NCBI GenBank assembly: GCA_051294905.1
Contig: CM119374.1
Coordinates: 23,374,001-23,438,000, forward strand
DNA: 64,000 nucleotides
Reading direction: 5' to 3'
Origin: Botryllus schlosseri
Lineage: Eukaryota
In this document: piece after piece, positions 52,995 through 56,699 of the stretch
How positions within the stretch are numbered: the stretch's first letter is position 1
Layout: every line of letters begins with the position of its first letter
Position numbers and translations under genes: made by a program
The notes under the pieces: generated by a model
What the model saw: only the letters and a program-made list of their open reading frames with translations
The model's database searches: none
What the model was told of the DNA's origin: nothing

Positions 52995-53990
52995 ATTGCT
53001 CATAATGATGGTTTATTTAGGCTATGAAAAGAAGTGTCCAATGCAGATGTCATGCTTATTTTTCTCTTTGCGGTAGCACATGGACACGTCATCGCCCATC
53101 GGGTGTTCGTGTGAGATACTCGCCAGCTGAATAAAAAATGTCCATTGAAGTATCAACTGCTTACTCACCTCAAATTCTGTAGTGTTGTTCCTTGTGTACA
53201 ATAGATATTGGGTTCCCTTGTCTGTTCCTTGCTCTAGCAAAGCTAAAATGGCCCGTTATAACTGCTGTTCAAACCAATAGTGATGCTTGAATACTTCAGT
53301 TGAAAGATTGCATAAGTTTACCACGTGAGTGTCAGCCGGTTGTTGGGCTTGTGCATGTAACCACTTTAATATGTCCACTGCAGACTCGTTAGTAGCAAGT
53401 GTAATTTGGACTTGTACGAAAATGATTGCTGTCCTTTCTTTAGGAGTGGACAAAATCGAATCACATTAGATTCAAGTTGGGTCCTGGAGATTTAGCTCGA
53501 ATCAAATCACCACTTATCGCGATTTTTCTGGACTGAGATTAACCGCGCAACATCTTTTAATCGAAACATAATTGTAACTTTTATGCTCAGTGGACATTAA
53601 TTAATCATGAATCCTAAATTACACTCACAGTGTTTCGAGCGGCTAAAATAGTCTTACTGAAAGCATGGATAGAGGTAGCCGGGTGTTGGACATATTAATT
53701 CACCTGATTGGAAAGCCAAGGAAACCTTTCCTGGTTTGCGTTCATGATTCCTAACTGTTACACTACATTCTCTTGCACTCAATGTTCAAAGATCATTTGA
53801 CTATCAGATGGAGAAGGATGTGTTGTGGCACTGTCAAATTCATCATTTATGGTCAGGGTAGCTAACATATGGGCAACCTCATTAGCACGAATCAACATAA
53901 TTATTGAGTCTTGAGTGCTTAACTGATGGGAGTGCTGATATCCACTGTCGCCCTAAATCTGATAATTACCAGTAAAGCAGTAATACTGGG
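52995..53990 (-). ncRNA. Putative spliced non-coding snoRNA host transcript
   Basis: Alternating minus-strand splice signals: donor 53969 (GTAATT), acceptor 53755/53751, donor 53703 (GTGAAT), acceptor 53643, donor 53628 (GTGAGT), acceptor 53378, donor 53321 (GTAAAC), acceptor 53234, donor 53168 (GTGAGT), acceptor 53127, AATAAA 53017-53012. The spliced ATG ORF I found is only 33 aa. The last intron (42 nt) is suspiciously short. Confidence 0.4.
53800..53886 (-). ncRNA. Probable box C/D snoRNA with SNORD68-like 28S rRNA guide
   Basis: Minus strand: gcta-ATGAGGT (degenerate C, 53882-53876)...CTGA (D', 53856-53853)-ccataa-ATGATGA (C', 53846-53840)...ATCCTTCTCCAT-CTGA (D, 53807-53804)-tagt. The guide is complementary over 12 nt (two G-U pairs) to the conserved 28S segment GUGGAGAAGGGU (rRNA sequence from memory); the D+5 rule points to the A in GUGG-A-GAAGG. 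A 58-nt form using ATGATGA as box C (TGAC/GTCA stem) is an alternative. Confidence 0.65.
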
Positions 53991-55697
53991 AGGGAGCAAT
54001 CAAAATCACTATGCCCCGGCCCCGGAATATCATTATTCTTGTTCATTCGATTTGTCCATCCTGATTCAAAATCCCTAGTCCTTAGCATCTTATTATTAGC
54101 GGAAGTAATTGGTACCAGTGACATTTTGCCTCTTCCATATTTTCCTTCTCATCTAACATAATTGCCATGACACCCATCATCTCACCCAAATGATTTTGGC
54201 AGTGCAATTATAACTGAAGTTTGTAATCAAGGCTGTCTTCCATTTGTGTAAAATGAGGAAGTGAGAATGTCAAGACTTTACCTAATGATAATCCTACTAG
54301 ACCTACTTTCAAACAGGCTTCCCACCATTCAATTTAGATCTGGGTCAACCTTAGTCTAGCAGGAATTGACCTCCAAAATGTTTGCACAAATGATAAAGCA
54401 AAGCTTTGATTGAAATCTGTTGTCTCCGATTACCGACCTTGTTTCAATGGAATGAGTTCATTTGCAATTAGCCTTTTGGACAATATTTTGCTGAAATATC
54501 AGTTCAGACATGAGTCTGCTGACTCGGTGTGCCGTCTCAACTCGTGAGTGCATCATTTATAGTAGCTCGACCAAGACATCCTGAATTATGACTAGGACAT
54601 CCTGAATTATGACTTGACTATAATGCAACCACGCAATATCATCATAGAATTGAATCGGCATGATTTCTAGATGACGGATCCATTTAAATTTTTTATGTTA
54701 CGTGTTCTAGTATGTTGAAGATTGTTGTTTGTCATTATTGGTGTTCCATTGAATTATTATGGTAATTAAGTTACAATTGACTCATGTGAATTGTTGGAGA
54801 TAGTCTTTTAACTGCTACTGTATTCTGCAATCTGCATATCATAACTTGTTGGGTAGTCTTCAGTGAAATTGGAATTAATTGATACTTAAATCGATGTAAC
54901 AATGTTAATTTTTTTTTCAAATGCATGAAGTAGCATATAAAATACATATTTGAGAGGCAACTTTGGCTAAACTATTCCAAATTATGCATTCCGGTTCCTA
55001 ATAAATGCATTTCTAGTAAATAGTTCAACCTAAGCATTCTATTCATGTGACTTCATTCATCGTTTTTTTGTCACCTGACGAGATCAATAACATCGCTTCA
55101 GGGCATGGAATATCATGACACTTATTATGGATTTTCAGCAACTGTTTGCTCTACCAACAAGTAAATTGCACTGCAGGCTATGTTTGATTTTTGCATGTGA
55201 TCATGTGAATTGAGTCATGTGACGGCTATACAATGCATGCGGTTGCTTGCTTAAAACTGAAAAGCAACTCCCTGATTTGAAACAGTTGCATTTCCTTAAT
55301 TCGGCTGCTGGTGATAGGTGTGTCCAGTTAAATATATTGTTGATTTGATCATCTCAAAATGACACAGGAAGTAGTTGAAAAGACTTGGTGCTGAGGTCTA
55401 ACAATCAAACGACCACACTGAGTTACTGATATGCGAGTGCAGGCATGCACTGAATGAAAATTACCAGAAGATAGCATAAGATTATAAGCATTGTAAAATG
55501 TAAATTAAGTGTATGGTATACATCGATTGGTATGTCTGTGGTTTGGTAATCTCAGGTGCAGAGTGGTATGTATACAGTAGAATCTGTTTGTTTTGTCTTG
55601 AAGTCGACTAGTGTCTGAATCATTTCATGTATACAGCTTTAATTTTGTGTTTACAGTTTATCTTCACCATCAGTATAAGCATAGATTCACCTCAAGT

Positions 55698-56699
55698 ATG
55701 AGGGTCGTTATTCTACTCGCACTGATAGCCGTTGTGTTCGCGTTGCCGCAAAAAGTGCAATTCAAAGAAAGCCTCAAAGAAATTGTGTACACCGTGAACA
55801 GTATCGATTCGAGCTGGCAGGCTGGACACAATTTCGACCCGTCCGTGTATACACTTCAAGACATCGCTGGATTGTGCGGAAGCTTGAAAGGGCCGAAATT
55901 GCCTTACCGTGAACCGCTGTTAGAATACAGCGATATCCCAGACAGCTTTGACGCACGTACGCAATGGCCGGACTGTGAATCAATCCGCGAGGTTCGCGAT
56001 CAAGGAAACTGCGGTTCTTGTTGGGCTTTTGGTGCTGTCGAAGCCATGACTGATAGATACTGTATCGCCAGTGGCGGAAAGTTGAAGCATCACATTTCTG
56101 CGGAAGATCTTTTGAGCTGTTGCGGGTTTGAATGCGGTAGTGGTTGTAATGGTGGATTCCCATCAGGAGCTTGGCATTATTGGAAAAACAGAGGTCTTGT
56201 CACAGGAGGCCAATACGGCACGGGCCAAGGATGTATGCCGTATCAAATCAAACCTTGCGAGCATCACGTTAACGGCACCAGACAGCCTTGCACTGGGGAG
56301 GAACACACTCCTAAATGTTCAACGACGTGTGCAGGCGATGAAACTATCGATTACGGATCTGACAAGCACAAGGGTGTTTCAGCGTACAGCGTGTCATCGC
56401 GAGTGGAGCAGATTCAAATGGAGATCATGACCAACGGGCCTGTCGAAGGAGCGTTCACCGTGTACGCTGATTTTCCCACTTACAAGACGGGCGTGTACAA
56501 GCACGTGACCGGCGGTGAATTGGGTGGGCACGCGATTAAAATCTTGGGATGGGGTACAGAGGAAGGGGACCCATACTGGTTGGTGGCTAACAGCTGGAAC
56601 AGCGACTGGGGCGATCACGGATTCTTCAAGATACTCCGTGGCTCCAACGAGTGTGGTATTGAAGGAGAAATCGTGGCTGGAAAGCCGGATTTGAAGTAG
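55698..56699 (+). CDS. CTSB: Cathepsin B precursor (papain family C1A), single coding exon, 333 aa
   Basis: ATG at 55698 then signal peptide [15 protein letters not shown] and propeptide; [14 protein letters not shown]; catalytic Cys in [11 protein letters not shown]; occluding loop [13 protein letters not shown]; catalytic His in [11 protein letters not shown]; Asn in WLVANSW; TAG at 56697-56699. The longer ORF call from 55611 runs through an upstream splice acceptor at 55656. Confidence 0.97.

Follow-up and report, generated by a model that had tools for sequence, protein, structure and literature searches.

A candidate box C/D guide RNA for the SNORD68 site of 28S rRNA in an intergenic region of the Botryllus schlosseri genome

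An intergenic region of the Botryllus schlosseri genome carries, on its minus strand, a series of short motifs in the order of a box C/D small nucleolar RNA (snoRNA), and the question is whether they form a gene whose product guides a methylation of the large-subunit (LSU) ribosomal RNA or are a look-alike arisen by chance. The region was studied within a window of 64,000 nucleotides, the whole stretch of DNA that was analysed (contig CM119374.1, positions 23,374,001 to 23,438,000; hereafter contig C4), in which the element occupies positions 53886 to 53800 on the minus strand (87 nt). A sequence-only reading had proposed that it is an orthologue of vertebrate SNORD68, or a convergent guide, lying in a different host. 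Our preferred explanation, held tentatively and at somewhat less than even confidence, is that the element is a functional box C/D guide for LSU-Am1740. It is in any case an ordinary, unconfirmed candidate, and no sign was found of its being made or conserved.

Along its 87 nt the element reads GCUA–AUGAGGU–19 nt–CUGA–6 nt–AUGAUGA–32 nt–CUGA–UAGU, where the last 12 of the 32 nt are AUCCUUCUCCAU. The 5' stem half GCUA (53883..53886) is complementary to the 3' half UAGU (53800..53803), pairing by G-U, C-G, U-A and A-U, and the resulting terminal stem of 4 bp with one G-U abuts both terminal boxes. Next to the 5' half lies a C-like box, AUGAGGU (53876..53882), followed by the D' antisense region UGCCCAUAUGUUAGCUACC (53857..53875), the D' box CUGA (53853..53856, an exact motif) and, 6 nt downstream of it, the C' box AUGAUGA (53840..53846, the exact consensus). 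The D antisense element AUCCUUCUCCAU (53808..53819) is joined directly at its 3' side to the D box CUGA (53804..53807), again an exact motif and 4 nt from the proposed 3' end. Boxes D', C' and D, with the 12-nt antisense element directly 5' of D, are thus where the sequence-only reading had placed them on the minus strand. One correction concerns the terminal C box: AUGAGGU is not canonical, agreeing with the consensus RUGAUGA at positions 1-4 and 6 and deviating at positions 5 and 7. The C-box bases critical for a kink-turn are U2, G3, A4 and G6, and these AUGAGGU would appear to keep.

The same DNA can also be read as a 58-nt core (53798..53855, minus strand), in which AUGAUGA becomes box C and a stem UGAC/GUCA encloses AUGAUGA ... 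CUGA. The 87-nt form has an abutting stem but two deviations in its C box, whereas the 58-nt form has the exact AUGAUGA but a stem offset by 5 nt from box C and by 2 nt from box D. In the minimum free energy fold the 5' GCUAA pairs with UUAGC inside the D' guide, in competition with the terminal stem; the D' antisense region becomes part of a predicted 5' hairpin in which the 5' stem and the C box are paired (GUGCUAAUG with AUGUUAGCUAC), and the 58-nt 3' domain is left separate. The overall fold of the element is not stable (z = 0.45), and C/D RNAs usually have no stable overall fold. The surroundings are rich in TGA triplets, as the 120 nt surrounding it contain nine where the window averages 2.5 (top 0.2%), and five of these nine are the boxes themselves.

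The rRNA targets were examined in the species' own rDNA. The array, on G000:C28, was located with a 25-mer and the genome's own sequence was used thereafter, the rRNAs being delimited by Rfam (SSU 1824 nt, 5.8S 154 nt, LSU 3726 nt). Complementarity to the species' own 28S, on which the proposal turned, is present: the D antisense element pairs with GTGGAGAAGGGT at LSU 1736-1747 in 12 contiguous pairs (10 Watson-Crick and 2 G-U) that begin immediately upstream of box D. As a correction to the earlier description, this is not a perfect 12-mer; the longest contiguous Watson-Crick run is of 9 pairs only, and it is flanked by G-U. By the D+5 rule the fifth pair falls on LSU A1740, and at offsets -50, -38 and -36 from it the LSU reads C, A and C, respectively. 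Since these offsets are the ones at which we take human 28S C2338, A2350 and C2352 (the U24/U76 sites) to lie from A2388, position A1740 fits the equivalent of human A2388, as had been predicted. SNORD68 is documented as the guide for 28S A2388: the methylation of this base in human has been shown experimentally, depends on SNORD68 and is fractional in HeLa cells, and the same RNA also guides 18S U428 (PMC6124571, PMC5027482).

The second antisense region has no such partner. No credible target of the D' guide was found in the own SSU, 5.8S, LSU, U2 and U6 RNAs; its best rRNA match, at SSU 135-144, has 10 bp of which 2 are G-U and does not begin until guide position 4, and against U6 or U2 it reaches 8 bp at most. 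It has no complementarity to the own SSU segment GATTCCGGAGAGGG either, in agreement with the earlier statement that it does not match the 18S target of SNORD68.

If the element is a gene, it would encode, in single copy and from the minus strand, a box C/D snoRNA of about 87 nt. One kink-turn would be formed by the C-like and D boxes, with the 4-bp stem closing them, and a second by the internal C' and D' boxes; Snu13, Nop56/Nop58 and fibrillarin would bind both. Through the 12-nt antisense element ahead of box D the RNA would pair with LSU 1736-1747, placing A1740 opposite the fifth nucleotide of the guide, where fibrillarin would add the 2'-O-methyl group. The D' element would serve as an orphan guide or be inactive. 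What is shown is the anatomy of the sequence, its complementarity to the species' own rRNA and its uniqueness in the genome; the production of the RNA, its assembly into an RNP and the methylation of A1740 are inferred from there on. Three non-intronic sources of the RNA are proposed because no host intron is visible. It may come from an unseen non-coding or low-abundance transcript, from the outron (the discarded 5' region) of the trans-spliced SDR gene downstream (described below), or from divergent transcription from the strong promoter of a cathepsin B gene 1.5-1.8 kb away.

The points in favour of a functional guide are that the box set is complete, canonically ordered and well spaced (19 nt, 6 nt and 32 nt) with a stem abutting both ends, that a 12-bp duplex starts at guide position 1 and falls on a site documented in human as methylated and guided by SNORD68, and that the locus is unique in the genome. 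Against it stand a silent, lineage-specific intergenic setting, a deviant and self-paired 5' half, a duplex with no more than 9 Watson-Crick pairs in a row, an orphan D' guide and the want of homology and of conservation. Rough products of the likelihoods of these points under 'real' and 'chance' differ by less than twofold. To our knowledge guides for the methylation of 28S A2388 are known from vertebrates and are absent from yeast. If the functional reading is true, a guide for A2388 was already present in the ancestor of tunicates and vertebrates, or arose twice, and such a guide can outlive the loss of its ribosomal-protein host intron. This would be a modest addition to snoRNA evolution, and even a real element would belong to a very well-known kind of RNA.

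With vertebrate SNORD68 (HBII-202; 28S Am2388 and 18S Um428) the element shares the predicted LSU base within the conserved segment GUGGAGAAGGGU, and in both the guide adjoins a CUGA box. The element differs in that it has no second guide for the 18S U428 region (own SSU GATTCCGGAGAG): the 5' guide of human SNORD68 (primer CGTGATGACATTCTCCGGAATC, PMC6124571) is complementary to the own SSU GATTCCGGAGAG, whereas the D' element here is not. Outside the boxes and the guide no sequence similarity to SNORD68 is seen, and the element is neither in RPL13 nor in a visible host transcript. No Rfam family was matched by the window at gathering score, nor by segments of 1.1 kb and 116 nt around the element at E<=10, the only hits being noise (snoZ159 at 16 bits, snR55 at 11 bits and sR35 at 9 bits). 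No C/D family of Rfam 15 therefore exceeds 16 bits on the element, a statement that leaves the presence of a SNORD68 model in Rfam 15 unconfirmed, as RF00573 and RF00574 are SNORD67 and SNORD69. The SNORD69 model gave over the whole genome a sub-threshold match with no convincing guide. A genome search for a SNORD68-like 18S guide elsewhere (UGAUGA plus guide) returned two loci, neither with snoRNA features, and no literature on SNORD68 in tunicates was found. The proposal of an orthologous or convergent guide is hence borne out for the LSU target base, and not for the remainder: there is no similarity beyond the guide and no Rfam match, and no second 18S guide, expression, host transcript or conservation was found.

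The published assignments of the two human guides are themselves at variance. Krogh et al. (PMC5027482) give LSU-2388 to the D' guide of SNORD68 and SSU-428 to its D guide. The SNORD68 forward primer (PMC6124571), however, reads as the C box followed by CATTCTCCGGAATC, and because it is complementary to the 18S segment GATTCCGGAGAG it suggests that the 5' (D') guide serves 18S, contrary to the assignment of Krogh et al.

Compared with the intron-encoded box C/D snoRNAs of metazoans, the element has the same C-D'-C'-D order, spacer lengths and 4-bp terminal stem, and the same 10-21 nt antisense ending at box D with its fifth-nucleotide rule. Unlike them it is not in the intron of an expressed gene and gives no sign of RNA accumulating, and it has two C-box deviations and a 5' half that is predicted to be self-paired. 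Intergenic snoRNA pseudogenes are usually copies of an expressed parent, whereas the element is a single copy with no parent in the genome. It resembles unexpressed intergenic snoRNA-like sequences and pseudogenes in being likewise intergenic, silent in RNA data and partly degenerate in its boxes. Among the intergenic snoRNAs annotated in human 591 of 658 are undetected and only 10% are expressed (PMC13736004).

Transcription of the region was assessed in RNA-seq run X23, which has essentially no coverage between 50.9 and 55.4 kb and no splice junction over the element; the cathepsin B gene beside it is covered 300-450x in the same run. In contig sets X1-X3 there is no more than scattered background (1-11x). 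X23 is apparently SMART/oligo-dT cDNA with 150-nt reads, which could not contain an 87-nt non-adenylated RNA and which should show the exons of any reasonably expressed host. By X23 and X1-X3 the element is not within an intron of an expressed transcript. No clear PSE or TATA of an snRNA-type promoter was found upstream, as judged against the genome's own U6 and U2 genes. The RPL13 gene is on a different contig (G000:C14:3944973-3945509, locus L042; the candidate is on C4), and its whole Ribosomal_L13e Pfam domain lies in one open frame of 218 aa, so that the coding region is intronless; no snoRNA was found within 3.5 kb of it. The claim that the element is hosted away from a ribosomal-protein gene is right in so far as it is not in RPL13, but the 'different host' carries little weight because the vertebrate arrangement in an RPL13 intron cannot apply to an intronless coding region.

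Downstream of the element and on the same strand lies the SDR gene (exons 48977-44431, minus strand), which is nearly silent and whose first matched exon is 4.8 kb away. On the opposite strand, about 1.8 kb from the element, is the cathepsin B gene (55698-56699, plus strand; Peptidase_C1 and propeptide), which has no introns and is expressed at a very high level. The closest homologues of both are proteins of Styela clava, with 69% identity for cathepsin B and 83% for the SDR exon. The S. clava cathepsin B homologue is 4.1 kb long, has introns and is not beside the SDR gene there, and the window's cathepsin B may be an inserted retrogene; an exact-protein look-up of it returned nothing on record. 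Upstream of SDR S. clava has a Carb_kinase gene and then a gene of 380 aa, neither of which is matched anywhere in the window. The synteny upstream of SDR thus differs. The S. clava loci of the cathepsin B homologue and the SDR orthologue, each taken with flanks of 10 kb, contain nothing corresponding to the guide or to the 600-nt region, and the candidate's stretch has no counterpart at either.

The cathepsin B mRNA appears to be spliced-leader trans-spliced. Its reads include 300 with a non-genomic 5' part that ends at 55655, with the consensus ...ATTGGAGTATTTGGTTGTATTA, and the junction is at a tttacAG acceptor 40 nt before the ATG (window 55640-55700). The 19-mer GGAGTATTTGGTTGTATTA has at least 554 dispersed copies in the genome, against none for the reversed control. 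Among the copies inspected (loci L063-L066) some are followed by AG/GT, as in SL RNA genes, and others run into unrelated sequence, the latter resembling what retrocopies of trans-spliced mRNAs would look like.

In the genome of 495 Mb the element is a single copy, and pattern searches in which G-U was tolerated show it to be the only locus that joins UGAUGA, this guide and CUGA. No second guide for A1740 was found by five genome-wide pattern searches, the G-U-tolerant ones included; each remaining match is a repeat, a fragment of rDNA or a sequence that has no boxes or no stem. If A1740 is methylated, the element is the only guide found for it.

The most serious rival is that the element is a chance look-alike, a piece of untranscribed TGA-rich intergenic DNA in which box-like motifs and a short rRNA complementarity have come together and from which no RNA is made. 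We give it the same confidence as the functional guide, somewhat less than even. In a Markov simulation (70 Mb, with the window's dinucleotide content and a 12-bp duplex with <=2 G-U) a CUGA preceded by a 12-bp rRNA duplex is expected 5.5 times per window, and 7 are observed. Five CUGA-guide sites with >=10 bp fall within 2.1 kb of the candidate. The chance rate is further illustrated at window 53260-53271 (plus strand), 550 bp from the candidate, where a perfect 12/12 complement to LSU 1754-1765 (BLAST E = 0.47), a site 18 nt 3' of the candidate's target, stands with no boxes. When an exact UGAUGA 12-45 nt upstream is added to the CUGA and the 12-bp guide, the expectation is 0.08 per window and 637 per genome. 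Some 2% of chance matches fall on a known site, given 106 known human rRNA sites (Krogh et al., PMC5027482) and 5704 nt of rRNA. In an architecture simulation 25% of random contexts contain a 4-bp stem placed as loosely as that of the 58-nt form; about 1.5 look-alikes of the 58-nt core with such a stem are thus expected at known sites per genome. The missing transcript, Rfam match and synteny point in the same direction, as do the deviant C box, the self-paired 5' half and the orphan D' guide.

The complete architecture is far less easily obtained by accident. The full C-D'-C'-D geometry was defined by a CUGA (D') that precedes C' by 2-12 nt, an RUGA box that precedes D' by 10-25 nt and a 4-bp stem abutting the terminal boxes. 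Given the core, it arises in random contexts with P = 2.45e-4. The expectation per genome is then 637 x 0.5 x 2.45e-4 = ~0.08 when every rRNA position is counted and ~0.0015 when only known human sites are, rates that are optimistic as the architecture criteria were written after the candidate had been seen. Coincidence must also account for the target being a documented methylation site and for the element being the only such locus for A1740 in 495 Mb. If the element is a coincidence after all, the work yields a measured false-positive rate for the spotting of boxes plus guide, of about 640 core look-alikes per 495-Mb genome.

Raw motif counts need care in this respect. The motif CCTTCTCCATCTGA occurs 24 times in the genome, and 17 of the 20 loci inspected (L021-L040 of G000) belong to one repeat family, alongside two unrelated single sites. 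This near-identical dispersed repeat carries the motif by coincidence and inflates the counts.

It is less probable, and in our view rather unlikely, that the element is a relic, a once-functional C/D snoRNA that lost its host transcription (for example by a rearrangement upstream of the SDR gene) and is now decaying. In both wobbles of the duplex a U of the guide faces a G of the rRNA, as expected if a perfect guide ACCCUUCUCCAC had decayed by C-to-T changes, but the human SNORD68 3' end, which we take to be ...CCCUUUUCCAUCUGA, presumably also has G-U pairs in its guide for A2388. The C box is damaged at two positions and the region is silent in RNA-seq, as a decaying gene would be; three perfect boxes, a stem and a guide should nevertheless not long survive unconstrained. 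A change of neighbourhood can be pointed to, as S. clava has the Carb_kinase gene upstream of SDR where the intronless cathepsin B gene is found here. On the other side, the genome has no functional parent or paralogue that shares the guide.

A more specific version of the functional guide, in which the element is the sole LSU-A1740 guide and is made with no host intron, from the SDR outron or by divergent cathepsin B transcription, seems to us improbable, more so than a relic. It would mean that a chordate can make a modification guide by a non-intronic route, and that the A2388 guide predates the tunicate-vertebrate split, its 28S and 18S guide functions being carried by separate RNAs.

Two further origins were rejected, that of an rDNA-derived fragment, as there is no rDNA similarity beyond the match of 9-12 nt, and that of a repeat or transposon copy, as the element is single copy. 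Sequences derived from rDNA do occur elsewhere in the genome. A 25-mer of the LSU rDNA (0-2 mismatches) has about 39 dispersed copies outside the C28 array, and the locus L045 (C2:17019368) is a diverged antisense rDNA fragment.
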